Of a DNA stretch of 64,000 nucleotides, positions 9,983 through 64,000 are shown piece after piece. Below the pieces are notes generated by a model. It was not told where the DNA came from and made no database searches. It was given only the letters and a program-made list of their open reading frames with translations. The stretch comes from Ranitomeya imitator (Eukaryota), in the NCBI RefSeq assembly GCF_032444005.1, contig NC_091282.1:307706001-307770000 (forward strand), in the 5' to 3' direction. Position 1 is the first letter of the stretch. Each line of letters begins with the position of its first letter. The position numbers and the translations under genes were made by a program.

Positions 9983-10285
9983 GCAGGCATGTTCGATACA
10001 TGACTCAAATGGGTATATTTCTCAAAGAAAAGGGTTTTATACTCATCTGCTCGTTTACCGTAGGTTTGATGTCGCTACCCCCCCTGATGAGTCAAAAGAT
10101 GAAACGCGTAGGGAGACACCAATCGCTAAAAGGATAAGGCGGCATGGCAAACACAGACCAATGCCGGACATGAGATCCTGGATACTCAGATAAGGCACCG
10201 GTTGAATATCTGGTCGCGCAGATGAGTATAAAACCCTTTTCTTTGAGAAATATACCCAATTGAGTCATGTATCGAACATGCCTGC
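9983..10285. mobile_element. Penelope-type relic: 68-bp inverted arms enclosing a hammerhead motif
   Basis: 9983-10050 is the reverse complement of 10218-10285 with one mismatch. Confidence 0.7.
10078..10120 (+). ncRNA. Minimal type I hammerhead ribozyme motif
   Basis: ccc-CTGATGA-gtc-aaaa-gat-GAAA-C-GC-GTA-ggg: intact core, 3-bp stem II, palindromic stem III. Confidence 0.7.
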
Positions 10286-10340
10286 TCAGCCTGATCTTCT
10301 TCATAGCCTGCTATTTTCACTACATAATGCAATACTGTAT

Positions 10341-11767
10341 TGCTGTGGAGTCGTAGTGGAGATGAATCTGTGCTACACTTTCTGTAAATGCTCAGTAGTG
10401 AGACAGTGCTGTGGAGTCGTAGTGGAGATGAATCTGTGCTACACTTTCTGTAAATGCTCAGTAGTGAGGCAGTGCTGTGGAGTCGTAGTGGAGGTGAATC
10501 TGTGCTACACTTTCTGTAAATGCTCAGTAGTGAGGCAGTGCTGTGGAGTCGTAGTGGAGGTGAATCTGTGCTACACTTTCTGTAAATGCTCAGTAGTGAG
10601 GCAGTGCTGTGGAGTCGTAGTGGAGGTGAATCTGTGCTACACTTTCTGTAAATGCTCAGTAGTGAGGCAGTGCTGTGGAGTCGTAGTGGAGGTGAATCTG
10701 TGCTACACTTTCTGTAAATGCTCAGTAGTGAGGCAGTGCTGTGGAGTCGTAGTGGAGGTGAATCTGTGCTACACTTTCTGTAAATGCTCAGTAGTGAGGC
10801 AGTGCTGTGGAGTCGTAGTGGAGGTGAATCTGTGCTACACTTTCTGTAAATGCTCAGTAGTGAGGCAGTGCTGTGGAGTCGTAGTGGAGGTGAATCTGTG
10901 CTACACTTTCTGTAAATGCTCAGTAGTGAGGCAGTGCTGTGGAGTCGTAGTGGAGGTGAATCTGTGCTACACTTTCTGTAAATGCTCAGTAGTGAGGCAG
11001 TGCTGTGGAGTCGTAGTGGAGGTGAATCTGTGCTACACTTTCTGTAAATGCTCAGTAGTGAGGCAGTGCTGTGGAGTCGTAGTGGAGGTGAATCTGTGCT
11101 ACACTTTCTGTAAATGCTCAGTAGTGAGGCAGTGCTGTGGAGTCGTAGTGGAGATGAATCTGTGCTACACTTTCTGTAAATGCTCAGTAGTGAGGCAGTG
11201 CTGTGGAGTCGTAGTGGAGGTGAATCTGTGCTACACTTTCTGTAAATGCTCAGTAGTGAGGCAGTGCTGTGGAGTCGTAGTGGAGATGAATCTGTGCTAC
11301 ACTTTCTGTAAATGCTCAGTAGTGAGGCAGCGCTGTGGAGTCGTAGTGGAGATGAATCTGTGCTACACTTTCTGTAAATGCTCAGTAGTGAGGCAGCGCT
11401 GTGGAGTCGTAGTGAAGATGAATCTGTGCTACACTTTCTGTAAATGCTCAGTAGTGAGGCAGCGCTGTGGAGTCGTAGTGAAGATGAATCTGTACTACAC
11501 TTTCTGTAAATGCTCAGTAGTGAGGCAGCGCTGTGGAGTCGTAGTGAAGATGAATCTGTGCTACACTCTCTGTAAATGCTCAGTAGTGAGGCAGCGCTGT
11601 GGAGTCGTAGTGAAGATGAATCTGTGCTACACTTTCTGTAAATGCTCAGTAGTGAGGCAGTGCTGTGGAGTCGTAGTGAAGATGAATCTGTGCTACACTT
11701 TCTGTAAATGCTCAGTAGTGAGGCAGTGCTGTGGAGTCGTAGTGAAGATGAATCTGTGCTACACTTT
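10341..11767. repeat. 66-bp minisatellite, 21 full units plus a partial unit
   Basis: Unit tgctgtggagtcgtagtggaggtgaatctgtgctacactttctgtaaatgctcagtagtgaggcag; starts at 10341, 10407 ... 11727. Confidence 0.98.
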
Positions 11768-12704
11768 ATGAACATTCTCAGTAGGGGGCAAAAGAAGCCA
11801 CATTTTTTTAAACTTCTGAATGTTTTTAGCACATTCAAATAATGAGAAAAAAGCATAAGCAAATAAGGGACCCCTAATTGTACTAACCTGGACAATCATG
11901 TAGACAGGTGACTTTTACCATACTGTCAACACCGTACAAACATAACCTAAAAAATAATGGTGGAATTGCATATTTTCACCATTTCATCTCACATGGATTC
12001 AAACCCCCCCCCCTCCAATATTTTTCAGTTTTTCAGAACATTGATTAAATGGATAGTGTTATACAGGCGAGTATCTACACAGCCAACTGCATGGATCTCA
12101 GCTGCAGATCCTTCATATGTGCTATACTTCTGCTTCTCCTTTGTTTGTTGGCCCCTTGTGGCTGTCAGACCAATGCTTGAGAGTGGCTGTCATTCACTAA
12201 TTAGGACAACGGGTATATATTAAGCAATAATCCAAACAAAATTGCTTGTTGTGACTGATAAAAAAGTTAATGTTATGACCTGTCACTGTCATGATAGCAT
12301 GTCCTTCGTTAAGAGGTTGTCTGATGAAATTGCAGTGATGACGTACCTGTAGGATATATCATTAATATCAGATTTGTGGTTGTCCGGGCAACACATTGTT
12401 TAGCTGTTACAAACTCCATCGGCTGTCTGATGTAAACACTTAAAACGGAGCCGGAAAGCACTGCTTTACTCAATGTGTAGCCGCTGTTGCTTGGTTCTGC
12501 ACAACATCTGCTATCAAAAGAAAAGGAGCTGTTCTTCAGCACCCAACAGCGGCTGCTATATGTTAAATGGCCCCTTCAAACTGTTTACCATCTGTTCTCT
12601 ATCAGAGCAAATATCAACTGATCAGGATAGGTCATCAATATTATTTTACCACCCCATATAATTGTATGACTTGGGTATCTGCTCTTAGCTCTTCATGCGT
12701 GGTA

Positions 12705-15893: not shown

Positions 15894-18452
<2,559 letters not shown>

Positions 18453-20997: not shown

Positions 20998-23733
20998 GAC
21001 CTGCCTAGGTTGACTGGACCTGCCTAGGTTGAGTAAAGAAGACTGTGAGTTGTTGGAGGAGCCGATTGGGGAGGAAGAATTGGGGGCCGCTTTGGCGGGG
21101 GTTGCTGGGGGTAGGGCTCCGGGGGCGGATGGTATTCCAGCTGAGATGTACAAGGTATTGAAAGAAACTTTGTTGGCCAAACTGTCGGAGGTGTATAATA
21201 GGTCATTGGAAAGAGGGGAGTTACCTGTTTCAATGAGAGAGGCTATCGTGGTCGTTATCCCTAAGGCCGACAAGGACCCACAATTACCAGAATCCTATAG
21301 ACCATTCTCACTTTTGACGGCTGACATTAAGATACTGGCAAAAGCTCTGGCAAACAGGTTATCTAGGGTGATTGACAGACTGGTTCACCCGGATCAGTCA
21401 GGCTTTATGCCCAATAAATCAACGGCACTTAATCTGAGAAGGTTATTTTTAAATTTGCAAATCCCTTCTGACAATGTTGGCAAACGGGTTGTGGTATCCT
21501 TGGACGCTCATAAGGCTTTTGATTGCGTGGAGTGGAGTTATTTGTGGTCAGTACTGGAACGAATGGGGTTTGGACCTAAATTTATCTCATGGGTGCGGCT
21601 GTTGTACTCTTCTCCGGTGGCCAAAATTAGAGTGAATGACGCTCTCTCTGAGACTTTCTCTTTATCTAGAGGTACTAGACAGGGCTGCCCTCTGTCCCCG
21701 CTGCTCTTCGCCTTGGCGGTGGAACCCCTTGCCGCAAAGATCAGAGGGTCCCGGGAGGTGAAGGGTTTTATGTACGGGGAGGCGGAAGAAAAAGTAGCGT
21801 TATACGCTGATGATATCCTGCTCTTCTTGGAGGATTCCGAGGGGACCTTGGTAAAGACGGAGGCCATTATTGAGGAATTCGGGAGTTATTCGGGCTTAAG
21901 GATCAATTGGGACAAATCGAATATGATGTTGATAGATGGGGATAGTGGGGACGGTGATGGGGGGGACTCTGTCACAAGGTTGAGGCTAGTTGAGAAATTT
22001 AAGTACTTGGGGATTCAGATCGCACTCCCTCTGACTAGCTTTGAGGAACTGAATTTGGCACCTCTTCTGCGTAAGATACGTACCAAGGTCCAGGCGTGGA
22101 AAAAGCTACACTTATCGGTAATTGGTAGGATAAACCTGATAAAGATGATTGTGATGCCGCAGTTACTCTATGTGTTGCACAATTCCCCTATATGGATATC
22201 GCAGAATAGGTTTCGGAGGATTAGATCTTTGTTTGGTGAGCTGATCTGGGGTGGGAAGAGCCCCAGATTTAAACAGGAAACCCTACAGAGACCAAAGACG
22301 GAGGGAGGGGTGGCATTGCCCAATCCGTGGTTGTATTTTTTGGCCTCACAGTGTCAGCATTTCAAGGGATGGGGAGATGGGTCAGGTGGGATGCGGGCAC
22401 CTTGCAGCCTGAGATCATTGATTGGGACAAAGGTGTTGAGTGAGGGCCTAGAGGGGGGACATTTCCGTGAGAAAGGTTCTAAATTTTGCACTGTAAGGCT
22501 CATTCACAAGGTGTGGGATAAAGTTAAAGGAATTAGGGGTGTACGGGCACTCACTAGATTCTCACCCATTTGGAACAACTGTGTCCTACAGGAGTTTAGA
22601 CAGATGGAGGGATTTCATATTGGGAGGGAGGCAGGCATCTCTCGGATGGGCCAGATTTTACATCAGGGTAGAATTAGAGACTTTGAGATACTGCAGGAAG
22701 AATTTTTACTCCCGGAGTCTGAGATGTACCAATACCGTCGTCTTTCTCATGCGTACCGGGCACAGTGTAAGAGAGGGCCTGTTGAAATCCAGGTGGATCT
22801 TATGCTGGATTTTATCCTTGAAGGGGGAGGCACGAAGGAGGTGATTTCGGGTATATATGAATTCCTTCTATTTTCTTTTCTGGCGGAGCACCCTATTAGA
22901 GCAAGGGCGAAATGGGAGGCTGACCTGGGGGCGATTGATGATGACCGATGGGAATCAGTATTGGATTATGTGCCCAAGATATCAATGAGTGAGCCTGGTA
23001 GGCTGTCACAATTATTTGTCATTCATAGGGCTTACAGAACCCCAGACATGTTATTTAAAGCCGGATTAAGGCCTAATTCAGAATGCCCTAGATGCTCGCA
23101 GTCCGAAGCGGGCATCCTTCATATGTTGTGGCAGTGCCCCAGGCTGTCCTCCTTTTGGGTGGTGGTGTTGAATAAAGTGGGTTTGGCATATAGTTGTAAT
23201 GTGCCTCGGGATCCTCTGGTATGTGTTTTTTTGGCTATGTGGAGGAGGTAATAACTGATAAGCTGTATAAAACGGTTATAGCTAGACTGTTATTTATTGC
23301 GCGAAAGTTGATCGCCAAATTCTGGATTAGGGAAGAGCCACCAACAAGGAGAGACTTTATGAAGCAAGTGGACCATATCATTGCTTTGGAGAAGAGTATC
23401 TACGTTAGGAGGAACAAGATGGACCTCTTTGACAGGTTGTGGAGCCCGTGGCTTGAATCAATGTGACCTGAAGACCTTTTGCCCCTATGGAAATATTTTT
23501 TGACAAGTCATCTTCCTCTTCTTGTACTTTTGTATGTGATAATTTAGTGGGGGATGACTCTTGACAGGTCTCTAGTGGGTGGGGGGAAGGGGGGTGGGAG
23601 TTTGGTTTGGGACTAAATAAGTTTTCTAACAAAAAAAAGTATTGTGTATTTGTATATTGCTGAAAACAAACTATTCCTTTTATTGTTTATGCACAATTTT
23701 GATGGTTTAATAAAAATATCTGATTCAAAAAAA
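20998..23733 (+). mobile_element. 5'-truncated L1-clade LINE
   Basis: TSD ACCAGTGACATT at 20986-20997 and 23734-23745; AATAAA near 23709 followed by a short A tail. Confidence 0.92.
21029..23466 (+). pseudogene. L1 ORF2 fragment: RT domain plus C-terminal Cys/His knuckle, one frameshift near 23225
   Basis: YRPFSLLTADIKILAKALANRL, SLDAHKAFD, GTRQGCPLSP, LYADD, CPRC...HMLWQC; C-terminus continues in frame 23221-23466. Confidence 0.92.
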
Positions 23734-24559
23734 ACCAGTGACATTATACACAAGAGCTCTGTATATACTGTCAGTGAACAGGTAATAAAGTGTATAGTGT
23801 CAGTGTACAGGTAACACACTGACTCACCAATAACATCTCTAGGTGAAGTCCTTCATCTTTGCTGTTCTTTTTCATGCAGTTCAGACCACCATAATTTTTT
23901 CCAGCCAGGACTTGTCTCTGCATAAAATAACACATAGTTACCTAGAGCCTCGCTTCCTGAGCACATTCCCCACTTTTTTCCTTTCTTCTACTACACTACA
24001 CATCTGAATACTGACGTGCACCCACCATTAATATATAATTAGTTATTATTTATCCACCAATATGCCTCCACCAACTATAAAAAGCCATTTTCCCCACTTA
24101 ATAAACATATACATTAATTAGCCCCTGTACTCTTTCCCACAATTCGTTACCAGCCACTGCATCCTCAGCGCCCCCCACTATGTGCCTCCAGCTCCCCCGA
24201 TTCATTATATTTACATGCCCCTTCCGACCCAATTCATTGTCATGTGTTCTCTCTCCCCCACCCCCACCCTCTATTCATTATCAACTGCTCTCCCCCCACA
24301 TTCAGTACATCATTTACTCCCACCACCCTCAAAATTAATCATTATTTGCTCTCCCCACCTTCAATTCAATTGCTGTCCGCTGTCCCTCACTTCATCATTT
24401 GCAGTCCCCCTCACGTCATCATTTGCAGTCCCCCTTCCCCTCACTTCATCATTCGCAGTTCCCCATTTTCCCCTCACTTCATAATGTTCAGTCCCCTTCC
24501 ATTCATGTGCAGTCCCCCGTCCCCTCCCTCACATAATTTGCAGCCCCCCGCCATCATTT

Positions 24560-25670
24560 GCAGCCATCCCCCTCTCCATCATGTCCAGATCCCCCCTCCA
24601 TCCTTCATGTGCAGATCCCCCCACCATCCATCATGTGCATACCCCACTCCATTCATCATGTGCAGATCCCCCCTCCATCCATCATGTGCAGATCCCCTCT
24701 CCATCCATCATGTGCAGATCCCCCTTCCATCCATCATGTGCAGACCTCCCTCCATCCATCATGTGCAGATTCCCCCCCCCCTCCATCCATCATGTGCAGA
24801 TCCCCCTCCATCAATCATGTGCAGATCCCCCTCCATCATGTGCAGACCCCCTCCATCCATCAAGTGCAAACCCCCTCCATCCATCATGTGCGGACCCCCC
24901 TCCATCCATCATGTTCAGACCCCCCTCCATCCATCATGTGCAGACCTCCCTCCATCCATCATGTGCAGACCCCCCTCCATCCATCATGGGCAGATCCCCC
25001 TCCAACCATCATGTGCAAATCCCCCCTCCATCCATCATGTGCAGATCCCCCTCCATCCATCCTGTGCAGACCCCTCCATCCATCAAGTGCAGACCTCCCT
25101 CCATCATGTGCAGATCTCCTTCCATCCATCATGTGCAGATCTCCTTCCCTCCATCATGTGCAGCTCCCCCCTCCATCCATCATGTGCAGATCCCCCCTCC
25201 ATCCATCATGTGCAGATCCCCCCTTCATCCATCATGTGCAGATCCCCCCTTCATCCATCATGTGCAGATCCCCCCTCCATCCATCATGTGCAGATCCTCC
25301 ATCCATCATGTGCAGACCCCCCTTCATCCATCATGTGCTGATCCCCCTCCATCCATCATGTGCTGATCCCCCTCCATCATGTGCAGATCTCCCTCCATCC
25401 ATCATGTGCAGATCCCCCCTCCATCCATCATGTGCAGATCCCCCCTCCATCCATCATGTGCAGATCCCCCCTCCATCCATCATGTGCAGATCCCCCCTCC
25501 ATCCATCATGTGCAGATCTCCCTCCATCCATCATGTGCAGATCCCCCTCCATCATGTGCCGATCTCCCTCCATCCACCATGTGCAGACCCCCCTCCATCC
25601 ATCAAGTTCAGACCACCCTCCATCCATCATGTGCAGATTCCCCCTTAATCCATCATGTGCAGATCCCCGT
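24560..25670. repeat. C-rich minisatellite, about 20-26-bp unit CCATCCATCATGTGCAGATCCCCCCT
   Basis: Direct reading; unit length varies through the C-runs. Confidence 0.95.
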
Positions 25671-27292
25671 AATGTCCAGACCAGACCACAGGCAGATATT
25701 TATTACACCCCCCACCCCACTTTCTGGGACTGGGTGCAAACAATGCCAGTGCTGCTGCTGTGCCCCAGCTTCCAGACAGAAACGAGCCTGAGGAGTCTGA
25801 GGGAAGTGGTGAGTCACTGACAGAGCCATGCAGCAGGCAGCGCGTGGGCAGGAGGGAGATCATGTTTACTTACTGTGTACTGCTCTGCCGCTGCAAGTCC
25901 CAGGCCAGCAATGTGTGTCCCAGCCAGGTCGGGAGACACGGAACCGCCATTCCACCTCAGCCCCACCCCTGGTAAGTGGAATGTGTGTCAGCAGGGAGTA
26001 GGGAGAGTCGACACCAACACCACATGTACTGACTGCCGCTCTGCCGCCCCCTGTCTTCAGGGATGCAGCGACATCCTCTCCTCACTCACTCCTCAGCAGT
26101 GACTCGCCAGAGACCCAATCCCCCCGCAGCAGCTGGAAGACTGAGGTGGGTGGGCGGGGCGACCCCGGACTTTACAAAAAAAAAAAAAATAATAACTTGC
26201 TCACGTGCCACCCCCCTCGAATTGTCCCGCCCTAGGCAGGTGCCCTCAAGTGCCTTGTTGCAAATACGGCCCTGCCCTTATCCCTAGCCTGGTAGGCATG
26301 TCTCCCTCATCCCTAACCTGGTAGGAATATCCCTCCTATCCCTAGCCTGGTAGGCATGTCCCCCTTATCCCTAGCCTGATAGACATGGCCCCCTCATCCC
26401 TATCCTAGTAGGCATGGTCCCACTCATCCCTATCCTGGTAGGCATGGTCCCCATCTCCGTCCTGGTATGCACGGCCCCATCCTTATCCTGGCATGATTGG
26501 CCTCCATCCCTATCCCGGTATGCATGGCCCTAATCAGAAAAAGATTAAAAAAACCATAAACCATTATACTTACCTTCCTGCACTCCCTCGCAGAGTCTTG
26601 TTCCGATGCCAGCAGCTGATTTATGCTTGTAAGCAGCGCTTGGCAGGGACACCATGCGCTACTTACAAGCCGAGGACAGCTGCCAGAATACTCGCTGCTC
26701 TCCACTTCAGGACTATGTGCGTGGAGAGCAGTTAATATTCATTGCTCTTTAATAGCGGGCACAATGTTAGACACGGGCTTCCTGCAGCTGCCGGGCATTC
26801 ACGTGTGGCTGTTACTAAAGGGAATGAATATTCACTGCATTCCACGCCTATGGGATTGGAGAGCAGTGAATATTCATTGCCTTAAGTAGCGGGCACACGC
26901 GAATGCCAGTCAGCTGCAAGAAGCTGGCGGCTGCGACTAACAGCGCTTCCGCTATTAAAGAGAAATTAATATTCACTGTTCTCCACACCCATGGGCGTGG
27001 GATGAAGTGAATATTAATTTCTTTAGCAGCGGGCACAGGAGTTGGCTGCAGCCGCTGGCTCCTGCCTCCTGTGACCCGCTGCTCTGCCATTGCCGCTCTC
27101 CCACCTCAGCCAGAGCAGGTACATCCGGACTAAAAGATGCACCCCCCATTTTCCTCCACACTTTTGGAGGAAAAAGGTGCGTTTTATAGTCCGAAAAATA
27201 CGGTAATATTGAAACAGCAATATTGTGAAAGGGTATGGTTAATTCGTGCTGAGAAGTGATTAGTATTTACTGGTTGATGTCGCTCCCTTCAG

Positions 27293-27463
27293 GAGTTTCA
27301 AGCCCAACTGGAAGAGATGAAGTTGATGATGCAGCAGTTAGAAGAAGACCTCTTAGCTGCTCGAAATCGTAGTGACCTGTATGAGACAGAATTAAGGGAG
27401 TCAAGATCAGCAGCAGAAGAATTTAAACGCAAAGCTACAGATTGTCAGCAGAAACTTCTGAAG
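27293..27463 (+). CDS. CIT: Citron kinase exon ([57 protein letters not shown])
   Basis: ctcccttcag|...|gtaatc; 171 bp; phase 0. Confidence 0.96.
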
Positions 27464-28184: not shown

Positions 28185-29465
28185 ACAATACAAAGTAACA
28201 AAAAGTTCAACAGTTACAGGGGGAGTGAGGGCCCTGCTCGCCAGCTTACCATGTATAAGGAAATGGGGGGACACAATAGGCAGAATATGCTTTTCATATA
28301 TAGTGCAGCCTTCATTATAATAAATAAGGGTTTTACTTTCATATAAAGCTGCATGATCCAGTCATCAGCCAGTATCTGTCTAAGTGCAGTTACCGTTACT
28401 GGGTGCATAGTGGGTGAATAGGAGGGAGCAGATAATAATTAACATTCAGAAGGAGAGAACAGTGGAGAGTTAGGTTGTTGAGCTGAAGTGAGAGACCTGT
28501 CTAAAGAGATGTGTTTTGACAACACTCTTAAAAACATGTGGGCTAGATATGTCAGATCATTTGGAGTAGTGCATTCCAGAACACTGGCGCAGCACAAGAG
28601 AAGTCTTGGAGACGGAGGTGCGAGGTTCGGATTATGGAGGATATTAGTCTTGGATCAGTTGCAGAACGGAGGGCACTGGTAGGGTGATGGAGATGAGGGA
28701 TGAGATATAGGGTGGTGCAGAACTATGAAGAGATTTGTGGGTGAGAGAGATAAGATTGTATTATATTCTGTAGTAGATGGGCAACCAGTGTAATGACTGG
28801 CACAAGATGGAGGCATCGGTGAAGCGGCTGGACAGAAATACGTCTCTGGATGCTGCATCCAGGACGGATTGGAGAGGAGAAAGTTTGGTTAGAGGGAGAG
28901 CTATCAGTAAAGAGTTGCAGTTGTCCAGACAAGAATGAATACAAGTCAGTAAGAGTTTTTGCAGTTTCAAAGGTGAGAAAAGGACGGATTCTGGAGATGT
29001 TTTTAAGATGCTGGTAACATGAGCGAGTGATTGGAATAAAGGAAAGTTCTGTGTAAAATATGACCTCATGACAGCGAGTGTGCTGCTTGGAAATTCATGG
29101 TTGAACCACCCAAGGTGCTTGCAGTATCGAGTATAGGTAGGATAGTAGAGGAAGAAACCTGAGAAGTTCAGTTTTGGAGAGATTCAGTTTTAGATAGACG
29201 GAGGAAATGATATTAGAGACAGTGGACAGACAATCCCTGATATTTTGTATTAAGGGGGTGGGGGGTATCGGGAGAAGAGCTGTATAATTGGGTGTCATCA
29301 GCGTAGAAATGGTACTGGAAACCAAATCTGCTGATGGTTTGTCCAATAGAAGCTATATATATAAGGGGCCTAGGACTGAGCATCGAGGAACCCCGTTAGT
29401 AAAGGGGAGAGGAATAAGAGCTGGCAAAAGATGCAGTGAAGGAGGAGAACCAGGAGAGGGAGAAC
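28185..29465 (-). mobile_element. Old, degraded L2 LINE 3' fragment
   Basis: Minus-strand remnants [41 protein letters not shown]; 3' UTR shares gagggccctgctcgc with the element at 30921-33705. Confidence 0.8.
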
Positions 29466-30862
29466 AATAGATTCTTGTTTCTTTTCATTTAACTCTTTGC
29501 TGTTATCAATGCTTCCATCGTTGTGAATACAGAAAGAGCACAAATGTCTCTTAAATACTAACCTTCCTAATTTATTTATTTTTAAAGCACCACTCCAGCA
29601 TGTTTTTTTCTTGTTTGTTTTTAAATTGTAGCCCTGGAGTGGTTCTACTAATATAAGCTCGCTGCCCATAAGGTTTTACTTATCAGTCGCCTCTTCTCTT
29701 CTTGGTGCCACTCTGGTTGGTCTCTGGCAGTTTGTGACCTGCCATAACGCTCCATTGTTTCCTGAGTGGATTGGAAGTCACAACTCAATGTAAATCTATG
29801 AGAGCCAGAACGAGTCTCTCATACACTTACATTGAGACTGACTTCCGGTCAATTAGCCATTGCGGTCACAAGATGGCGGCGCGGGACCGAAGCAGCCCTG
29901 GGAAACGCAGAAGACGTCAACTAGTAAGTATAAGACTGGGGTCAGGGAACTTGGATTAGGGGCACCAATCCAGCGCTACAATTAAAGCAAACAAACAAAA
30001 ACCACTGGAGTGGTTTCTTAGGGTACGTTCCCACAATCCGCTTTTTGATGAGTTTTTGATGTTGCAGATTTTCTGCACCCATTAAGTAAAATGGGATTCT
30101 TGCATTTTTTTCAAAAATACACAGCGTAAAAAACTCAACAAAAAGTCATAGTGGGAATGTAGATTAAAAGGAAATCTATTATCAGATTTTTGCTACCACA
30201 TTTGAGAGCAGCCTGATGTAGGCAAAGAGACCCTGACCCACACCAGGCTCTCCATAGACAGTAAGCTGCTTATCACAGAAGGGGGCTGAGGTGGGCCAGG
30301 GCTCACAGGACCAGCTAGCCACAGTATTGTTACTCACAAGGTGTAAGTAATCAACACCACACAGCTGGAGATTTGACACATCATTGAGTTCAGTGTTTTA
30401 ACCCCTACATCATTCTGTCCTCAGGTTACATACAAAAACCTGCTGACAAATTCACTTCAATTAATCAATAGTACAAGTGAAAATAAACTTTGTAATGCAG
30501 ATATGTCTCTCTCTCATTCTGGACTGATAATTCATTTTTAATTAATGGGTAAAATCTGTCTTCAGTGAATACAGATTTCCCCATTATTGAGTTGGACATG
30601 ATTAATGCTGCTCATAAGATTCTATGGAGAAAGGAATGGAGGAGAAAGTGGCAGACATTCTGCTGCAAGATCTCCTGAAAGTACACAATTATATTTTGTA
30701 TTCTGTTCTGCTTTCCTTTCATTGGTGTGTCACCCACTTCAAAAGACCGGATGTGATATTTTTCACCCCTACTTAATACTTAACTAGAACTAATGGCAGT
30801 TTTAGTAGATTAATCGTGTAAATTATAGAAAACAATATTTACAAAGTGTTTTTTTTGTGCAG

Positions 30863-30916
30863 GCTAAAGATCATGGCAAGACTGAAGTTGGAGAACTGCA
30901 TACTAAATTGGAGAAG
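30863..30916 (+). CDS. CIT: Citron kinase exon (AKDHGKTEVGELHTKLEK)
   Basis: ttttgtgcag|...|gtaata; 54 bp; matches recalled mammalian AKDQGKPEVGEYAKLEK. Confidence 0.9.
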
Positions 30917-30920
30917 GTAA

Positions 30921-33705
30921 TAATAAATAATAATAATTTTATTTATATAGCGCCAACATATTCCGCAGCGCTTTACAAATTATAGAGGGGACTTGTACAG
31001 ACAATAGACATTACAGCATAACCGAAATCACAGTTCAAAATAGATATCAAGAGGAATGAGGGCCCTGCTCGCAAGCTTACAAACTATGAGCAAAAGGGGA
31101 GACACGAGAGGTGGATGGTAACAATTGCTTTAGTTATTCGGACCAGCCATAGTGTAAGGTTCAGGTGTTCATGTAAAGCTGCATGAACTAGTTAACTGCC
31201 TAAGTATGTAACAGTACAGACACAGAGGGCTATTAACTGCATAAAGTGTGTTGCGAGAAACCTGATTGTTTTTTTTTTTTTTAATGGGCCACACAGGGAT
31301 AGTTAGGTTAATGCGCTGATGTGGTAGGCCAATCTGAACAAATGAGTTTTTAGGGCATGCTTAAAACTGTGGGGATTGGGGATTAATCGTATTAACCTAG
31401 GTAGTGCATTCCAAAGAATCGGCGCAGCACGTGTAAAGTCTTGGAGACGGGAATGGGAGGTTCTGATTATTGAGGACGCTAACCTGAGGTCATTAGCGGA
31501 GCGGAGGGCACGGGTAGGGTGGTAGACTGAGACCAGGGAGGAGATGTAGGGTGGTGCTGAGCCATGGAGTGCTTTGTGGATGAGGGTAGTAGTTCTGTAC
31601 TGGACTGGCACAAGGTAGAGGCATCGGTGTAACGGTTGGTGAGGAATATGATCCTGGCTGCAGCATTCAGGACAGATTGGAGCGGGGAGAGTTTTGTTAG
31701 AGGGAGGCCGATTAATAGAGAGTTACAATAGTCCAGACGAGAATGAGTAAGTGAAACAGTAACAGTTTTTGCAGAGTCGAAAGTAAGAAAAGGGCGAATT
31801 CTAAAACTGTTTTTGAGATGCAGATAAGAAGAGCGAGTCAGTGATCGGATGTGGGGGGTGAATGAAAGCTCGGAATCAAGTATGACCCCAAGGCAGCGGG
31901 CATGTTGCTTTGGAGCCGCACACGGAGATGACAATGTCAGGCAAAGGTAGGTTAATAGAGGGAGAAAACACGAGGAGTTCAGTTTTTGACAGGTTCAGTT
32001 TCAGATAGTGGGAGGACATGATGTTAGAGATAGCGGTAAGACAATCACTGGTGTTTACTAAAAAGGTCGGCGTCATAACAGGAGAAGAAGTGTATAATTG
32101 GATGTCATCAGCATAGAGATGGTACTGGAAACCAAATCTACTGATTGTTTGTCCAATAGGGGCAGTATACAAAGAGAAAAGGAGGGGGCCTAGTACTGAT
32201 CCTTGAGGAACCCCAACAGTAAGGAAAAGGTGAGAGGAGGAGGAACCAGCAAAAGATACAGTGAAGGATCGGTCAGAGAGATAGGAGGAGAACCAGGAGA
32301 GAACGGTGTCCTTGAGGCCGATGGAGCGGAGCATATTGAGGAGGAGCTGATGATCCACAGTATCGAATGCTGCAGAGAGATCCAAGAGAATTAGCATGGA
32401 GTAGTGACCATTAGATTTAGCTGTTAGTAGGTCATTAGAGACTTTAGTGAGGGCAGTTTCAGTAGAGTGTAAAGAGCGGAAACCAGATTGAAGAGGGTCG
32501 AGAAGAGAGTTATCTGAGAGATAGCGGGTAAGACGGGAGTGGACCAGGCGTTCAAGGAGTTTAGAGATGAAGGGAAGATTAGAGACAGGTCTATAATTAG
32601 CGGCACAGTTTTGATCGAGGGATGGTTTTTTAAGTAATGGATATATGATGGCATGCTTAAATGAGGATGGAAAAATACCGGAAGTGAGAGAAAAGTTGAA
32701 TATTTTTGTTAGGTGAGAGGTGACAGCTGGGGAAAGGGACTGGAGGAGATGTGACGGAATGGGGTCACTGGTGCAAGTGGTTGGGCGAGAAGATGCAAGG
32801 AGCCTGATTACTTCTTCTTCTGTAACTGGTTCAAAATCAGAGAGTGAACTAGATGCAGTAGGGGAGGGAGGACAGTGCATGGTATGAAGAGATTGGGAGA
32901 TGATTTCCTGTCGAATGTGGTCAATTTTTTCTTTGAAGTAATTGGCCAGATCGTCAGCGCGGAGATCCGTGGTTAGGGCCTGCACTCTTGGGTTGAGTAG
33001 GGACTGGAAAGTGTCAAAGAGACGTTTAGGGTTATTGGACAGTGAGGTGATGAGGGTGTTGAAATAGGTTTGTTTGGAGAGATGAAGGGCAGAGTTGTAT
33101 GTTTTTAGCATGAACTTATAATGGATGAAATCTTCGGGTAGATTAGATTTTCTCCACAGATGTTCGGCGCACCTGGAGCACCGCTGCAGGAAATGTGTTT
33201 GTAGTGTGTGCCACGGTTGTTGCCGTCTGTGCCGAGTTGTTTTATGTATAGGAGGTGCAGCTTCATCCAGAGCTCTTTGCAGGGTTTCATTGTAATGTTT
33301 CAGAGCAGAATCAGGACATGAGATGGAGGAGATTGGGGCCAATGAGAACTGCAAGTTCTTCATAAGTTTCTGGGTGTTAATGGCCTGTATGTTTCTATAA
33401 GTGTGGAAAGTGGGGGTCATTTGAGCGGGATGACAGTTCTTGATAGAGAATGAAAGAAAATTGTGGTCAGAGAGCGGGAGAGAGAAGTTTGTGAAATCAT
33501 CCACTGAGCAAAGCCAGGAGAAGACTAAGTCGAGGGAGTTTTCATCTTCATGCGTTGGAGAGTTAGTAAGCTGTGAGAGGCCGAAAGAGGAGGTTAGAGA
33601 TAAAAGGTGAGAAGCAGATGGGGAGAGGGGAGAAGCAATGGGGATGTTGAAATCACCCATGATGAGGGTGGGGATGTCACAGGAAAGTGTCGAAGTCAGG
33701 TGGCA
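30921..33705 (-). mobile_element. 5'-truncated L2 (CR1 group) LINE with EN C-terminus and RT, frameshifted 3' part
   Basis: ORF 31876-33783: [48 protein letters not shown]; (ATT)n-type tail at 30921-30940. Confidence 0.93.
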
Positions 33706-35300
33706 AAGGTAAATATTTTGTCGTCTTTTTATTTGTCTCCATCTATTTGATGTGAAAGCAGATTTGTCACCAAGATTGTGCATTACTAACTGATTGAGTT
33801 GTAAGACAAAAAAAATCTCATATGTGTTGAGGCTCGTTTGTTTAGATAGAAAGTTATTTAGAATGGCTTTATATTATTATAAAGTGTTCCTACCTGAGAA
33901 TGTTATGAGCCCTTTTTTAGCTAAAGGGAACCAGTCAGCAGGATTGTGCTCAGTAACCTACAGACACTGTCAGGTTGGGGCCGTTATACTGATTAAGATG
34001 ATACCTTGGTTGATGAAATCCATCTTGTGGTTGTTGTTTAATCTTTTTCAGTTAATGAGATTCTCGTGCTGTGGGGTGGCCTGTGGGGGGTCTTTATGTG
34101 GTGCTCTGCTTAGCTATTCATATTGATGACTTATGACAGGTCACTGATCGCTCAGTGACCTGTCTATTTTACATACTGAATATTATATGTATTGAAAAAT
34201 TGAAAAAAAAAATCACATTCAGCAGGCAGGCACCTGTGCTACAGTGTGATCACATGTATAATATGCATTAAATTGCTTTATTTGCGGATATAAATTTATT
34301 CAGAAAAAAAATAATTCTTCTCGAATGGCGCCGGCCGATAGTAGCATCTATCGGATCACCGGGACGGCTACTGCGCCGACGCGTCTGGCTCCATTTTGAG
34401 ATTTTTTTTTCAGAATCAATGTATGTGACGAAATAAAACAATTTAATGCACATTATATATGTGATCATGCTGCATTGCAGGCGCTACCACTTGGGCCTGC
34501 CTGCTGAAGGTGATTTTTTTTCCCCCATTAATAATCAGTATGTACACCAGTGGGCCGGTCACTAAGGGATCAATGACCTGCCATAAGCCGTCAGTATGAA
34601 TACCTAAGCAGAGCACCACATAAAGACCCCCCACAGGCCACCCCCGAGCACAATAATCTCAATAATTGAAAACTGACGTCATAACCTTGGAACGCTTCAA
34701 TGGATGGCACTGATTCTGTTTTCTCATGACATATTGGACGTCACGATAGTGGTAAAATCTATTTGCTGTTACTTGCGTTTATTTGTGAAAAAATCGGAAA
34801 GTTGGTGAAAATTTAGCAATTTTCAAACTTTTAATTTTATTTACTGAAATCAGAGAGTCATGTCACAGAAAATAATTAATAAAGAAAATTTCCCACATGT
34901 CTAATTTTTGAAACATAATATTTTACATTTGACCAGTGATTTCTCATTTTTACAACAAAATTTACAAAACTATTTTTTTTAGGGACCACCTGAAATTCGA
35001 GGTGCCTTTGAGGGGTCTATATTACAGAAAATACCCCAAAGTGATGCAAGTGTAACTGGAGAAATTGCACCATACGATTTCTCCAGTTACAATTTGTTGT
35101 GCAATTTCTCCTGAGTTCACTGATACTCTATATGTGGTCGAAAATATTTTTGAGGCACAGAGCAAAGCTCAGACTAGAAGTAGCGTCATATTGTAGTGCA
35201 GATCTTGCTGCACTGGTTTGAGGGTGCCATGTCACATTGGCAGAGCCCTTGAGATGCCAGAACAGCAGAACCCCCCCATAAGTGACCCTATTTTACAAAC

Positions 35301-50822: not shown

Positions 50823-50876
50823 ATCAATGCCGACCAACTGATTAAAATCCAGGAGCTGCAGGAGAAGCTTACTAAA
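50823..50876 (+). CDS. CIT: Citron kinase exon (INADQLIKIQELQEKLTK)
   Basis: atcaccag|...|gtaagt; 54 bp; matches recalled mammalian INAEQQLKIQELQEKLEK. Confidence 0.93.
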
Positions 50877-54197: not shown

Positions 54198-55539
54198 TAG
54201 CTTTTTACTAGATACTAAAACTTTTTTAGAAATACGGTATGTTTTTAAACCGCCCAACCTCCCCCCAGATAAATCTAAAAAAGGCTGCTAGTCTGTCTGT
54301 TAGTTCACAGAGAGAACTGCAACTTAGAGGGCTCCTAGTACATAGAGCAGTTTTGGTAGTCGTGTGATGGCTCCAAGGCTGATATTCAGCTAAAAGTATG
54401 AAATAAGGAGTGTTTTCCATTTATTTAATAATGCCTTTAATTCACAGAAGAGTTTTATGGAAGTTTTTTTGTGTTTTCTCAAGACCATGAGTAAGGCAGA
54501 AAGTTGAAACGCTTTGTTCTGGTTACCAGTACCCTACTTTTGAATTGCCATTGGAGCCTGTTTTAATCTGAATATTATTAAACATTAACTTTTGCTTACA
54601 TAGAATGCAGCCTTATTCGCTGGATCATTACTCCTCTATTTCATGTACAGTAAAACATCATCTTCACACAAGCATACCTGAAAGATGCTATTTCTCAATT
54701 TGACCCTGGCTATGTCAGTATTTTGGATTTTCTTGACCACTAGCTGTTCAGTGCATCATACAACTGATAAAAGGGACAGCAGACAGCCCTTGCTTATACC
54801 ATTATCAATACAGAATCTGTATAAAGTACTAACGATGCAGCTTTATAGCATCTGTGGGAGATGACTAAAGAGCATGGAGGGCTGATAAAAGCGGGCTTGA
54901 GAACCCAAACCTCTTCATGATGGTGAATAAGAAATGCTAGCTCAGGTGGTCAAATGCCTTTTCAGCATTAAGACTAAGCGGTATTGCTGTCTGTCTTCTC
55001 TTATTGACTATGTCCACTAAATCTAGGACTCATCCAGTAATGTCACAGCCTTTAAAGAATAGTACGGAACCTGCTTTATCTTTGTTCATGAAATATGGTA
55101 GCCAGGGATTTAGCCGTTTTTCAAAAATGTGTGTGAAATTTAAAAAATCCGAGTTTATGGGGGTTATAGGCAGGAAGAGACTACTATCTTTGGAATTTCT
55201 GCCTGGCTTAGGGATCAGAATAATGAAAGAATGTGGCAGTGGAGTTGGAATAGGAGATCCCTCCCAAACAATATTGAACATGTATGTCATATGGGGAATG
55301 AGTACTTCTGCAAAGGTTTTATAATATTTGTGGGGGGGCGTGACCGGATGTGGAGCTGAGCGGACGTGCGAGGCTCGAGCTCCCTAACCACCAGCTATCA
55401 TAAGCGGCCCAAAGCACAGTGAGGTGACCGGAGGAGGTCAGATCTGAAGATAAGATAAGCCAGGCGGTGGTGTACTCCAGGAATGAAGCGAGGGAGAAGG
55501 AGGGGGCAGGCGCCCAGCAGGGTCCAGGTCTTTGAAGCG

Positions 55540-56622
55540 ATGGGTAGTTGGATCCAAGATGGCGACCGCAACTCTCACCACGCGGCCGCCGGCAGCAGCA
55601 GGAGTGATGGCAGTGTGAAGCAAAGGTCAGAGCTGCACAGTGAATCACTCCACCAGCCCCAAACTCCCAGCAAAACTGAAAGATCCCTGAGCACACAGAG
55701 CTATTCACCAACGCTGCAGTCCCTGCTTTTCCCCCCTGCTAGGAATGCTGAAGGTTCAGAGCCTGAAGATTTACAGCCACTAAACACAGCCCTGACCGTC
55801 TCCTCAGACTCTCCTATTACAGACTCCAATTCTGCCCCTGTCACTGTAGCCACACTCAAATCCCTGCTGGGAGACCTGAAGCAAGCCATTCATACTGATA
55901 TCACAACGGCTTTCACTGAGCTACATAAAGAAATAACGCAGATTGGCGACAGAACCTCACACATAGAGGGGAAACTGGAGGAATATACTACGGCGCACAA
56001 CCAACTAGTAGACGCGCATAATGAAGCGGACGAAGAAATCATGGCCCTAAAACTGAAGCTTGCAGACCTAGAAGACCGATCCAGGCGCAATAACCTACGT
56101 TTCAGAGGAATCCCTGAGAGTGTGTCAGCGGATACACTAAAGGAGTTTCTAATGGACTTCTTCACAATTCTGGTGCCGTCAGCAGAACACAGGGACCTGC
56201 TGATTGACAGGGCACATCGGATCCCCAAACCAAAGTCTGCTCCCAGCTCCGCACCGCGAGACGTGATAGCCAGGCTGCACTTCTACCATTTCAAGGAGGC
56301 AGTGACCAAGTCAGCGTCAGCAAAGCAAGAACTTCCAGAAAGATTCCGGAACATTCTGGTGTTCACCGACTTGTCTGCGACAACCCTGAACAGGAGGCGA
56401 GAATTCTCATCCGCAACCAAGATTCTACGGGACAACAGTATTGTCTACAAGTGGGGATATCCAGTAAAGCTCATCGTGACGAAAAACGGAACTTCACACG
56501 TCCTTGCGTCTCCCAGAGAGGCCATGACCCTGCTCCAGGAATGGTCCCTGACATCAGTGGATGAAGATACCAGCTCCCCACTAAAGAAAAGACCCCCGAC
56601 ACTGAACAAAGAATGGACCTGA
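55540..56622 (+). CDS. L1 ORF1p (coiled coil, RRM, CTD)
   Basis: LEDRSRRNNLRFRGIPE, IDRAHRI, RDVIARLH, VFTDLS, YKWGYPVKL; first in-frame ATG at 55540 (true start uncertain). Confidence 0.9.
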   Translation: MGSWIQDGDRNSHHAAAGSSRSDGSVKQRSELHSESLHQPQTPSKTERSLSTQSYSPTLQSLLFPPARNAEGSEPEDLQPLNTALTVSSDSPITDSNSAPVTVATLKSLLGDLKQAIHTDITTAFTELHKEITQIGDRTSHIEGKLEEYTTAHNQLVDAHNEADEEIMALKLKLADLEDRSRRNNLRFRGIPESVSADTLKEFLMDFFTILVPSAEHRDLLIDRAHRIPKPKSAPSSAPRDVIARLHFYHFKEAVTKSASAKQELPERFRNILVFTDLSATTLNRRREFSSATKILRDNSIVYKWGYPVKLIVTKNGTSHVLASPREAMTLLQEWSLTSVDEDTSSPLKKRPPTLNKEWT

Positions 56623-56929
56623 TTCTCACGCAAGTACTCTGTTACCATATGTATCCCCTGTGTGCCTATGCCAGGACACCACACTGTTATTTTTTTGCCT
56701 GGCTGGCAGGTTGAAGGGGCATGAGAATATTGCTTTCGTTTTTTCTATTCTCTCCCCCCCTTTAATACTGGATAGGAACGACTATCCAGTTGGTTCACAT
56801 AGAACCGGACTCTGAGTTGTACAAGTTGTACTTGTTCTGGTTGTTGTTAATTACTTTAACCCCTTTGCTTCCCTTATTATTATCCTGTATCTGGTGACTG
56901 ATTGAATTTTTTTTTCTTTTTTGTAACTG

Positions 56930-59900
56930 ATGGTATTTCAAATATCTAGCATTAATGTGAAAGGCCTAAACAGCCCTTTCAAGAGATCGTTATTATGGAA
57001 GGAAGCCCAGGCACTCAAAGCGGACATACTATGTGTCCAAGAAACTCATTTAAATCGTGATGATACACATAGACTACAACATAAAAATTACCCCCATATC
57101 TATGTGTCATATGCGGCGAAAAAGAAGAGAGGGGTAGCGATTGCAATAAAAGACACTGTAGCGTTCCAGCTTGTTGATAGCGTTCTGGATGATGAAGGCA
57201 GATATGTAATATTGATATGTAGCATCAATAACAAGGTGTATACAATTGCATCTATATATGCACCCAATACAGGTCAAATCACTTTTATTAAAGACCTCAT
57301 AACTAAATTATCCAAAATAAAACAAGGATCCCTGCTAATCTGTGGAGATTTTAACCTCGTCCCGATCCCCAACATAGACAAATCTTGGTGCTCAAAGAAA
57401 AAGTCCCAATCCCATGCGCTGTCCCAGTGTCTTATATCAGAAGAATTGTATGACACGTGGAGGGTCCTTCATGCTTCTGAAAGGGATTATACATATTACT
57501 CCCACCCACATAAAGTATATTCAAGAATAGATCTAATAGTAGTGGATAAATGGCTCCTACAAAATATACAATCAGCAAAAATTGGGAACATAACCTGGTC
57601 GGACCACGCTCCTGTAACATGCCAAATTAAAGAGACGTACAATAATTTAACTTATTCTCCGTGGAGAATTAATAACTTCTTAATAGCCTCAGATAATATT
57701 AAATCCCAACTTAACGACCTTCTCCAGGAATTTTTTGATATCAATAGTACCCCTGACATATCCCCGACCACAGTGTGGTGCGCCCACAAGGCCTATATAA
57801 GAGGGCGGCTAATACAGATAGCAGCGCAACACAAAAAATTGAGAATGCGACAAATAGAAGAGCTCAATAAAAATATAGCAACAATGGAAAACATCCATAA
57901 ACATAGCCCATCACCCACGGTATATAGGAAACTACAAAAGGCAAGATACGAACTATATCAGCTATTCCAATATAAATATGAGCATAATTTGAGGAGGAAT
58001 AAAGCTAAATATTATTGGCAGGGGAATAAGGCGAGTAAAATACTTGCCAATAAGATTAAAGCGAGATTAACAAAGCAAAAAATAGCTCACATACAAGATG
58101 ATCAAAAGAACAAAATATACAACCCTAAAGAAATTGCGAATACTTTCGCAAGATATTACTCCTCACTCTATAATCTCAAGACCGACAACCTTATCCCACA
58201 ACCCAACGCTGAGCTAATTAATAATTTCCTGAATAGCATATCTTTACCCCAAATCCCAGAGGATAAATTGATGGCAATAAATCAACCTATAAGCCAAAAA
58301 GAAATCCAACAAACCATTCAGGCAACAAAAAATAATAAATCCCCAGGACCGGATGGTATAACTAATGAATACTTGAAGTTACTCAACCAAATATTGTCCC
58401 CACATCTATTATTAGTCTTCCAAAATATATTTGAAACAGGCAAAATACGAGAAGAAATGTTACAAGCGACTATAGTCCCTCTTCCCAAGCCAGGAAAAAC
58501 TCCCGATCATCCAAGTAATTTCAGGCCAATATCCCTACTAAATACTGACCTCAAGCTGTACTCCAAAATCTTAGCAAATAGACTCTCCGATGTAATCCCT
58601 TCCCTGGTGCACAGAGACCAGGTTGGATTTATCAAATCTAGACAGACATTGGACGGCACCAGACGAATGATTGACCTCATCCATGTGGCGGGGAGCGACC
58701 GGACGCCTTCTCTGCTCCTATCCCTGGACGCGGAGAAGGCGTTCGATCGGGTGCATTGGGGATACCTGTTTGAGGTTCTGGCCAGATTCGGATTTACGGG
58801 TAATATTGCTAAAGCAATCACTCTGCTATATTCTCACCCATCAGCATCGGTTTCTGTCTCTGGAATGATGTCGGACAGGTTTACTATTACTAACGGGACG
58901 AGACAGGGGTGTCCGCTATCACCCCTTATATTCGCTTTGGTGATTGAGCCTCTAGCGCAGAAAATTAGATCACACTCGATGATATCAGGAATTCAGGTGA
59001 ATAAAACGGAACACAAAATAGGCTTATTTGCTGACGACATCATTCTAGCGTTAACAAACCCGACAGAATCATTACCGGCAGCAATGCAAGTAATCGATTC
59101 ATATACTAAAATATCATATTATAAGCTGAACGTGTCTAAATGCCAGGTATTAAACCTGACCCCTCTCACAAAACACCCCAAAAGCTTTGAGAATAAGTAC
59201 CCTTTTAAGTGGGAAAATGACCACATTGAGTATTTGGGTATTCGGCTGACACTCTCGGCAGATAAAATGCTATCACTGAATTATGAGTCTCTAAGGAAGA
59301 AAATCCAAACTGACATGTTACGTATGAAGAAACACGAACTATCATGGCTGGGCAGGATTGCATCGGTAAAAATGTTCATTCTCCCACAAATACTGTATTT
59401 GTTCCGCAATCTCCCCATCATATTCCCAATGAAAATATTAAAAGAGATTCAAGCAATGATTTTAAAATACATTTGGCAAGAGAGAAAACCCAGAATCCAA
59501 GCGGACACGCTTTACATCCCTATGAGTAAGGGTGGCCTGGGGTGCCCCTCAGTGGTCCGGTGCTACAGGGCCGCATTATTCGAACAGTTACGATTCATGT
59601 GGAATAATGATGATGATCGGCACTGGATAGCAATTGAAAAACATTTGATGAGAACCTCCAATGTCTCAGCTTTTTACCATGCACATCAAACTAAAGTCCC
59701 TAATAGAAACCTAAAAATGTCCCCAACAATAGACGCGGCTCTGGAGCTATGGAGTGTGTTGACTAATAAATTAGGCCTTATACAAACCGCATTCCTCAAA
59801 GCTCCTATAGAGACACTGGAGCATTGTATCCCGGACCTCAAACTTAAAAATTGGAATTTACCCAAAACCACCTCAATTGGGAACTTGTATGAGGGGGAGG

Positions 59901-63357: not shown

Positions 63358-64000
63358 TCTATAATATTTGTGAAAAAGAGCAGATATCTCAGGGGTGGTA
63401 GATTCATTAACCAGATATTGAAGTTTTGTGGAGTGTTGCTTAGAATTTGATCTTGGAATAGTTGAGCTAATAGGGTATGAGTTCTGTGGAGACACAGGGT
63501 CAGTGGGTGTTTTTGTCCGCTGACTCGGCTGTCTATAAAAAGACTGCATGGTCAAGGGATCATACCACTGAATACCTGCTTTCTCTTTTCATGGGTATAA
63601 AACTACTCGGACAACACAGGGTGAGGGTAAAACAGTTTGGCAATAATTTATTGAACCTCCAACACACAATAGCATATAGAAACGTCCTAGCAAATATGCA
63701 AGATGGTACAAATTACAGAATCTCACCCTTCCGCTGACTCGGCTGGTTCAGAGCTGCTTCCAAGGCCGACTACCGCTTTTGGCGGGCCCCCACAGAGAGG
63801 AGTAATGATAAGTTTAGGGATATCGATAAGTTTAGGAATCTAAGGCTGGGTTCACACTTTGCGGTTTTTACCGCGGAACTGCCACGATTTTGATTCTGTG
63901 GGTCCACAGCAGTTTCCATAGCGTTTCCATTTACATGTAAACCCTATGGAAACCGCAAACCGCTGTGCACATGCTGCGGGAAAAACCGAGCAGAAACGCA

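Follow-up and report, generated by a model that had tools for sequence, protein, structure and literature searches.

Introner-type transposons, which Huff, Zilberman and Roy are said to have described in 2016, are reportedly DNA transposons that create new introns, the target duplication supplying a splice site. The locus described here resembles introners in that an apparent target-site duplication copies splice-site bases and both copies resemble a splice signal. Unlike introners, it involves a LINE and an intron that was already present. An introner-like creation of this intron was considered and rejected: the same exon boundary and intron are found in Xenopus tropicalis, in a fish-like contig and in another tetrapod.

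Known features of L2 insertions are short duplications, 5' truncation and microhomology at either end (PMC2666801). Whereas that work used retrotransposition assays of zebrafish ZfL2-2, the insertion described here arose naturally in the germ line of a frog and has a tail of the TAA/ATT type. As in the "hazard zones" described for mammals (PMC3088655), the L2 lies in a zone that is depleted of LINEs, and its antisense orientation is the one found in excess among the survivors near donors. In contrast to those survivors, it lies far closer than usual: the L2 begins at +5 of the intron, within the donor core of about six bases, and the comparison is with a study of mammals only. Disease-causing L1 and Alu insertions at or near splice sites lead to exon skipping, for example of MET exon 14 (PMC12934576). 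Those cases share with ours a retrotransposon next to the splice site of a short exon; they are new and harmful, with skipping shown, whereas ours is part of a reference genome and putatively neutral. Our explanation of the locus as a whole, in which we have good though not full confidence, is that target-primed reverse transcription placed an L2-clade LINE in an intron of CIT, among its first bases, with little effect.

The host gene and the affected exon

By window we mean the whole stretch of DNA that was analysed (64 kb). When exons were searched singly, seven collinear exons in the window matched residues 374-650 of citron Rho-interacting kinase from Rhinophrynus (P0133), and on this similarity the gene hosting the insertion is identified as CIT (citron Rho-interacting kinase). 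Kinase, C1, PH and CNH domains are present in P0133, and the exons coding for them lie outside the window. Expression of citron kinase is commonly reported for testis, embryo and developing brain. The following exons are referred to below (a slash marks the exon-intron boundary):

27293-27463, plus strand: upstream CIT exon, 57 amino acids, donor AAG/GTAATC (tblastn with residues 557-614 of P0133, 88% identity)
30863-30916, plus strand: 54-base CIT exon (AKDHGKTEVGELHTKLEK), in frame and of phase 0 on either side (sequence and similarity to CIT proteins)
50823-50876, plus strand: next CIT exon, 54 bases (INADQLIKIQELQEKLTK), donor AAA/GTAAGT (tblastn and sequence)

The exon at 30863-30916, which occurs only once in the window, has the acceptor ...ttttgtgcag/ and the donor GAGAAG/GTAA. 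The intron between it and the exon at 50823-50876 is about 19.9 kb long and contains the L2. The 18-residue peptide of the exon is identical to CIT of Rhinophrynus and of X. tropicalis at 17 positions each and to that of X. laevis at 16, and AAG/GTA donors are found on the same exon in Xenopus, the fish-like contig and the other tetrapod. From these comparisons we regard the exon as conserved from fish to frogs. The orthologous donors are too diverged to reveal the ancestral bases +4 to +6; that of X. tropicalis, a species too distant for this purpose, reads GTATGG. One more contig, mammalian in appearance and perhaps human, was left out of the donor comparison after its protein had been compared. 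Exactly these 18 residues are absent from one X. tropicalis model (P0208) and present in 14 other pipoid-frog models, and the short in-frame exon may be optional (a cassette exon). In the poison frog, the one run that may be RNA yielded transposon contigs only, and none of its contigs covered the exon. Scans of the coiled-coil CIT exons against PDB and Pfam gave no specific match. A word search with a 62-amino-acid CIT exon returned unnamed fragments only.

The inserted element

Judged from its sequence, the insert is an L2-like LINE in antisense orientation, truncated at its 5' end, that starts at 30921 and measures about 2.79 kb. It is made up of the following parts:

30921-30936, minus strand: 3' tail of the L2, a short repeat of the TAA/ATT type; the donor from +5 onward comes from it, GTAA being followed by TA (sequence)
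30937-31263, minus strand: L2 3' untranslated region with terminal hairpin (AGCGC...GCGCT, 30949-30972) (sequence, folding, very high contig depth)
31264-33699, minus strand: L2 ORF2 remnant comprising the endonuclease end, the reverse transcriptase and the C-terminal part (alignment to P0002 covers residues 212-1037 of 1044)
33700-33708, minus strand: 5'-truncated L2 end, of which AAG at 33706-33708 is common to the target (loose-end consensus of 55 organism B contigs; DHFATW motif of P0010 and P0002)

A non-LTR-type reverse transcriptase domain (RVT_1, E = 4.4e-37) lies in the open reading frame at 31876-33783 on the minus strand. Amino-acid identity to dendrobatid ORF2 proteins is 84-93%, the lower value being that of a full-length, 1044-amino-acid Phyllobates protein (P0002) and the higher that of a Ranitomeya protein. 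Full-length relatives carry an APE-type endonuclease (PF03372 and PF14529) N-terminal to the reverse transcriptase in the same ORF; the copy at 30921-33708 has kept only the end of this domain (...LIMGDFN... motif), with an alignment that begins at residue 212 of P0002. Two frameshifts (near 31903-31913 and near 31602-31632) interrupt the remnant, which implies that the copy is not extremely young or that it was derived from a defective source. Compared with other copies, it also has a 2-base deletion near 33686.

In place of poly(A), the element has a short tail of tandem repeats at its 3' end, together with a hairpin. The hairpin at 30949-30972 appears in both the minimum free energy and the centroid fold, the z-score of the whole 88 nucleotides not being significant. 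A second copy of the L2 3' end, sought within the 64-kb window to define the tail, was not found. Contig depth over the L2 is 1e5-1e6 and declines from 3' to 5' in three species; the copy number of the family is enormous. L2 elements dominate the platypus genome, and the 45-58% identity to platypus reverse transcriptase proteins therefore fits an L2. The close matches are unnamed reverse transcriptase proteins of frogs, fish and platypus, and it is similarity to these, as distinct from a curated transposon library, that suggests placement in the L2 clade.

The junctions and the direct repeat

A direct repeat of target DNA abuts both ends of the L2, and the ends of the element were set independently of this repeat:

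30914-30920, plus strand: left duplication copy AAGGTAA, which holds the working donor AAG/GTAA (sequence)
33706-33712, plus strand: right duplication copy AAGGTAA, which with 33713-33714 gives the putative ancestral donor AAG/GTAAAT (sequence)
33713-33921, plus strand: unique intron DNA on the right-hand side of the L2 (depth of about 10 in all DNA runs; contigs of organisms A and B)

An earlier note on this DNA had described the exon as ending GAGAAG/GTAA with the L2 tail directly behind it, and AAGGTAA as recurring at 33706-33712 in front of non-L2 sequence (atattttgtc). Both descriptions hold: what follows GAGAAG/GTAA is TAATAAATAATAATAA and then the L2 3' end, with the L2 counted from 30921, and the DNA beyond the right copy is unique. 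The note had let L2 homology stop at about 33705. This has to be corrected, as other copies (55 contigs) place the end at 33708; in their loose-end consensus they run ...CAGGTGGCAAAG and then TG, where the present copy has GT. Continued L2 homology beyond 33712 would have argued against the duplication, and none was found: contig depth collapses after 33731, a value of about 1e5 giving way to one of about 10 in the bin 33732-33915.

The AAG of the right copy fits the 5' end of the L2, matching its consensus up to 33708, and the TAA of the left copy (30918-30920) is in phase with the TAA-repeat tail of the element, a 3' microhomology. The length of the duplication can for this reason be given only as 4-7 bases. 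The comparison supports a target-site duplication of that length, part of which (AAG) is 5' microhomology, as had been proposed from the sequence at the outset. Any duplication that ends at 30920 and 33712 leads to the same empty site, GAGAAG/GTAAATATTTTG, in a stretch 2,792 bases shorter, and if the duplication is accepted, the single-copy site before the insertion would have read GAGAAGGTAAATATTTTG.

Contigs of organisms A and B

Separate contigs of organism A cross both junctions with 0-2 differences, one covering 30549-30911 plus 36 further letters and the other 33658-33951. They speak against an assembly error in which a high-copy L2 was misplaced into this intron, and so do the private differences of this L2 copy from its family. 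Such an error would be encouraged by the enormous copy number of L2, and the best-matching DNA sample may be the window's own source and hence not independent; even so, we hold a misplacement to be extremely improbable. We read the insertion as a real and ordinary LINE insertion that is probably lineage-specific.

Organism B is a related species that has diverged from the window by about 5%. One of its contigs, of 340 letters, fits 33706-33948 at 95% and continues with 97 letters that are not L2; in the contig mapping, 30912-30950 was masked as a simple repeat, and joints touching it were dropped. A contig that breaks exactly at 33706 is what an empty site would look like, and to judge from this right-hand part organism B may have one. 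A word search for empty-site contigs in relatives with a 40-amino-acid frame around the 54-base exon gave no match. A related species that apparently lacks the insertion offers a possible with/without pair for the study of donor-proximal insertions and for dating the activity of a very abundant L2 family.

The same contig bears on the question of whether the second AAGGTAA is a duplication at all. It could have arisen by chance and microhomology at a blunt or deleting insertion, in which case the ancestral donor may already have resembled GTAAT. L2 insertions are sometimes blunt or accompanied by target truncations (PMC2666801), and with the right AAG present in the L2 consensus and the left TAA fitting the tail, the strictly unambiguous part of the repeat shrinks to GTAA or even a single G. 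However, going leftward, the contig still fits across AAG and breaks only at 33706, as is predicted for an empty site that contains AAGGTAA; with a blunt junction at 33709, the break would fall three bases away from there. The 7-mer moreover sits precisely on each of the junctions, which is an uncommon match. AAGGTAA occurs three times on the plus strand of the window, and among pairs of window positions equally far apart, 6.5e-5 share an identical 7-mer, or 0.9% if a slide of 5 bases is allowed at both ends. We therefore consider a coincidental repeat quite improbable and retain the target-site duplication.

Proposed insertion mechanism

Starting from what is observed (the element and where it ends, the direct repeat, the identity of the gene and the conservation of the exon), we infer the position of the nick, the order of events and the neutrality of the outcome. 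The L2 would have inserted after the lineage of this frog had split from that of its close relative. The plus strand would have been nicked between intron bases +4 and +5 (GTAA^AT), and the freed ...TAA-3' end could then have annealed to the TAA-type repeats at the tail of the L2 RNA and served as primer for the cDNA. Reverse transcription presumably halted within the region coding for the endonuclease, and the cDNA end (...GGCAAAG) would have been joined across a 7-base staggered break by means of the 3-base AAG microhomology. Filling in of the stagger would have duplicated AAGGTAA. The left copy would be original DNA, so that the exon retained AAG/GTAA and only +5 and +6 were altered, from AT to TA, giving a donor nearly identical to the AAG/GTAATC of the neighbouring exon. 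The right copy would be one further weak decoy deep in the 20-kb intron.

On this account, the donor was kept because the nick fell just past the four most important intron bases and the staggered break left those in place. The earlier idea that the L2 "rebuilt" the donor is accordingly not borne out, the left GTAA being best read as original target DNA that was spared by the nick. The accompanying statement that the working donor is now partly transposon stands, as the donor from +5 onward is element sequence. The locus points to no new mechanism and is an ordinary insertion, probably a harmless one; its value is that of a clean natural case of how near a donor a LINE can land and yet persist.

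Consequences for splicing

The energy of pairing with U1, a crude measure of donor strength, is -6.6 kcal/mol for the present donor, -6.8 kcal/mol for the duplicate and -6.6 kcal/mol for the donor of the neighbouring exon. We conclude that the insertion was most probably tolerated, splicing being affected little if at all. Its tolerance would be aided by the antisense orientation of the L2 and by the exon being short, in-frame and maybe optional.

The same insertion might instead be functional. The L2 at +5 may have changed the inclusion of a conserved 18-residue coiled-coil exon of CIT by shifting it toward skipping, or may feed L2-containing transcripts with antisense-L2 pseudo-exons, and either would have altered the ratio of CIT isoforms in this lineage. 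The insertion would have cost the donor its U1 pair at +6, and it placed 2.8 kb of purine-rich antisense L2 with strong cryptic donors next to the exon. Within the L2, U1 pairing equals or exceeds that of the duplicate at 20 GT sites, among them AAG/GTAGGT at 31947 and AAG/GTGAGA at 33607; cryptic donors also lie at 32230 and 32528. A pyrimidine-rich AG at 33559-33562 might act as the acceptor of a pseudo-exon of 146-148 bases that ends at the duplicate. Skipping would be viable, given that one X. tropicalis model omits exactly this exon. Fewer LINEs than expected lie within 50-100 bases of exons, and those found there join chimeric transcripts more often, although antisense LINEs near donors belong to the tolerated class (PMC3088655). 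Against a functional effect, the present donor is the same as the neighbour's (AAG/GTAATC) through +5 and differs by 0.2 kcal/mol from the duplicate; the frame and acceptor of the exon are intact, and its peptide is identical to that of a distant frog at 17 of 18 residues. We thus think a change in exon inclusion unlikely, and regard the contribution of pseudo-exons with the same doubt. If the L2 did alter inclusion of the exon, this pair of closely related poison frogs would offer a natural with/without test of a LINE at the donor core.

The right copy of the repeat had also been put forward as a notable competing donor. This idea is weak, as U1 pairing is equally good or better at 53 other GT sites in the 20-kb intron, including those in the L2. 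Used with the present acceptor, the duplicate would yield an exon of 2.85 kb with a stop 22 codons on.

Structure of the insertion

A 5'-truncated L2-like LINE sits in the intron downstream of a conserved 54-base CIT exon. It is a genuine and probably lineage-specific insertion at intron base +4/+5, and its target duplication of 4-7 bases kept the core of the splice donor intact. The features concerned are:

30863-30916 (+), 54-base CIT exon, acceptor ...ttttgtgcag/, 3' end GAGAAG/GTAA
30914-30920 and 33706-33712 (+), two copies of AAGGTAA
30921-33708 (-), L2-like LINE
30949-30972, short hairpin near the 3' end of the LINE

The sequence from 30921 is the reverse-complemented 3' end of the LINE and begins with TAATAAATAATAATAA; an AT-rich stretch and the hairpin come next. 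As the earlier note had described, AAGGTAA is found at both edges of the insertion, and the sequence beyond the second copy is unrelated. Across the window the + strand has only three occurrences of the motif, of which the third serves the upstream exon as its donor. Among other pairs of window positions at this spacing, 6.5e-5 share an identical 7-mer, or 0.9% when a five-base slide is allowed at both ends.

To the right, 55 contigs of other L2 copies from organism B, a related lineage, pass 33684 with the consensus end ...CAGGTGGCAAAGTG, and the studied copy reads ...CAGGTGGCAAAGGTAAAT at the same place. The loose-end consensus encodes HFATWLP, a motif also present in related proteins. Judged by this consensus, L2 homology stops at 33708. 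The anatomy given in the earlier note thus stands apart from this 5' boundary, which had been placed three bases further left, at about 33705; homology does not reach 33712. Since AAG (33706-33708) belongs equally to the L2 and the repeat, part of the 7-mer is 5' microhomology, as had been suspected, and since TAA (30918-30920) keeps the register of the TAA repeat in the tail, there is also microhomology at the 3' end. The two together put the duplication between 4 and 7 bases, the range originally proposed. For any length in this range, removing the element and one repeat copy would give the empty site GAGAAG/GTAAATATTTTG.

The insertion neatly illustrates a known process. In retrotransposition assays, a zebrafish L2 element left 5'-truncated copies with short duplications and with microhomology at either junction (PMC2666801), and the present copy shows all of these. 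Mammalian LINEs are scarce in the 50-100 bases next to exons, the donor core spans about six intron bases, and the survivors near donors are mostly antisense (PMC3088655). The studied L2 is likewise antisense, but, starting at intron base +5, it lies unusually near the exon.

The element and its family

A long minus-strand reading frame encodes a reverse transcriptase domain (RVT_1, E 4.4e-37). The translated frame is 84% identical, from residue 212, to a full-length Phyllobates terribilis protein of 1044 residues (P0002); for proteins of Ranitomeya variabilis and Dendrobates tinctorius the identities are 93% and 88%. In the full-length relatives an APE-type endonuclease precedes the reverse transcriptase. 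The copy keeps residues 212-1037 of 1044 and has two frameshifts; it is therefore truncated within the endonuclease-coding region and has lost its coding capacity. We call the element L2-like because of its tail type, its hairpin and its 45-58% identity to platypus reverse transcriptase proteins, which point to this assignment.

Depth was measured from contigs of four public runs aligned to 29500-35000. Across 30972-33731 the summed depth is 1e5-1e6 (three organisms). In organism A, which is source-like, it declines steadily from 1.3 million at the 3' end of the LINE to 0.12 million at the 5' end, a pattern typical of a highly abundant LINE family whose copies are 5'-truncated. The bin 33732-33915 has a depth of about 10 and is therefore unique DNA.

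Further right lie very high-copy repeats common to three dendrobatid organisms (33922-34106 and 34652-35000, depth 1e5-1e6), with a sharp onset at 33922. A pair of inverted arms (34045-34160 and 34557-34672) hints at a MITE-like element.

The CIT exon

For the coiled-coil exons, neither Pfam nor PDB gave informative matches, and the upstream exon of 62 residues matched unnamed fragments only in a word search. A large protein search led to a 2071-residue Rhinophrynus dorsalis protein, named citron Rho-interacting kinase in its source, with kinase, C1, PH and CNH domains. Exons were compared with this reference one at a time: seven of the window's exons are collinear with residues 374-650 of the protein, and the 54-base exon matches it in 17 of 18 residues.

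This exon is present in 14 of 15 pipoid-frog CIT models, and one X. tropicalis model (P0208, UniRef, 2024 aa) is without exactly its 18 residues. This difference hints at an optional exon in frogs. The exon is phase 0 at both ends, so the frame is kept if it is skipped. The consecutive CIT exons 30863-30916 and 50823-50876 are both exactly 54 bases (18 residues) and phase 0.

A probable empty site in a related lineage

Contigs of organism A differ from the window at 0-2 positions and span both junctions (30549-30911 with a further 36 letters reaching into the masked tail repeat, 30912-30950; 33658-33951). Organism B differs by about 4-5% in the unique flanks and is thus a different lineage. 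At a filled site, the alignment of a contig should continue into the L2; with a single AAGGTAA after the exon it should break at exactly 33706, and with a blunt junction at 33709, three bases later. An organism B contig of 340 letters and ordinary single-copy depth matches 33706-33948 at 95% identity, and its 97 extra letters at the left do not fit the L2. Organism B thus probably lacks the insertion; the evidence is good but incomplete, as it covers the right piece of the contig, and joints touching the masked repeat are dropped from the alignment.

Leaving out a contig of mammalian, possibly human, appearance (L003), the orthologous donors of more distant species read AAG/GTATGG in X. tropicalis, AAG/GTAACA in a fish-like contig and AAG/GTATGC in one tetrapod contig. 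They are of no help on positions +4 to +6. They do show an old origin for both exon and intron.

Donor strength and the duplicated site

Donor strength was approximated by U1 duplex energy, a crude measure by which the insertion would have barely changed the donor.

U1 duplex energies of the donors compared
Donor; sequence; U1 energy (kcal/mol)
Present donor; AAG/GTAATAAT; -6.6
Duplicate (putative ancestral donor); AAG/GTAAATAT; -6.8
Donor of the upstream exon; AAG/GTAATC; -6.6

The idea that the duplicate survives as a competing donor fared poorly, as 53 other GT sites in the 19.9-kb intron pair with U1 equally well or better. The antisense L2 holds 20 of these 53, some of them far stronger (e.g. 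31947, 32528 and 33607). Joined to the present acceptor, the duplicate would define an exon of 2.85 kb, in which a stop comes 22 codons past the end of the present exon. A pseudo-exon ending at the duplicate would require a new acceptor, and the only pyrimidine-rich candidate within the 400 bases scanned upstream is at 33559-33562. The duplicate thus looks like an ordinary decoy rather than a special competitor, and any effect of the L2 on splicing would more likely come from the cryptic donors it carries and from its sheer size beside a short exon. Among the public runs that carry the locus, none is recorded as RNA, and the one possible RNA run gave transposon contigs only at 29500-35000.

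Other repeats in the window

10209-11894, satellite, about 25 copies of a 66-base unit, 95-99% alike
15963-18153 and 61158-63358, 2.2-kb direct duplication, 91-93% identical, 45.2 kb apart, rich in 33/34-base repeats; the first copy stops about 150 bases ahead of a CIT exon
21014-23248 (+), 745-aa open frame, reverse transcriptase-like, sense, in a CIT intron
24495-25700, C-rich array of 25/26-base units (CCCTCCATCCATCATGTGCAGA-like)
28479-29409 (-), older, different L2/CR1-like fragment, antisense, in the intron before the 54-base exon, 42-49% amino-acid identity to P0002
55459-60700 (+), apparently intact L1/Tx1-like LINE, sense, in the CIT intron after the next exon, with ORF1 of 387 aa (55459-56619) and a stop-free ORF2 of 1258 aa (56927-60700)
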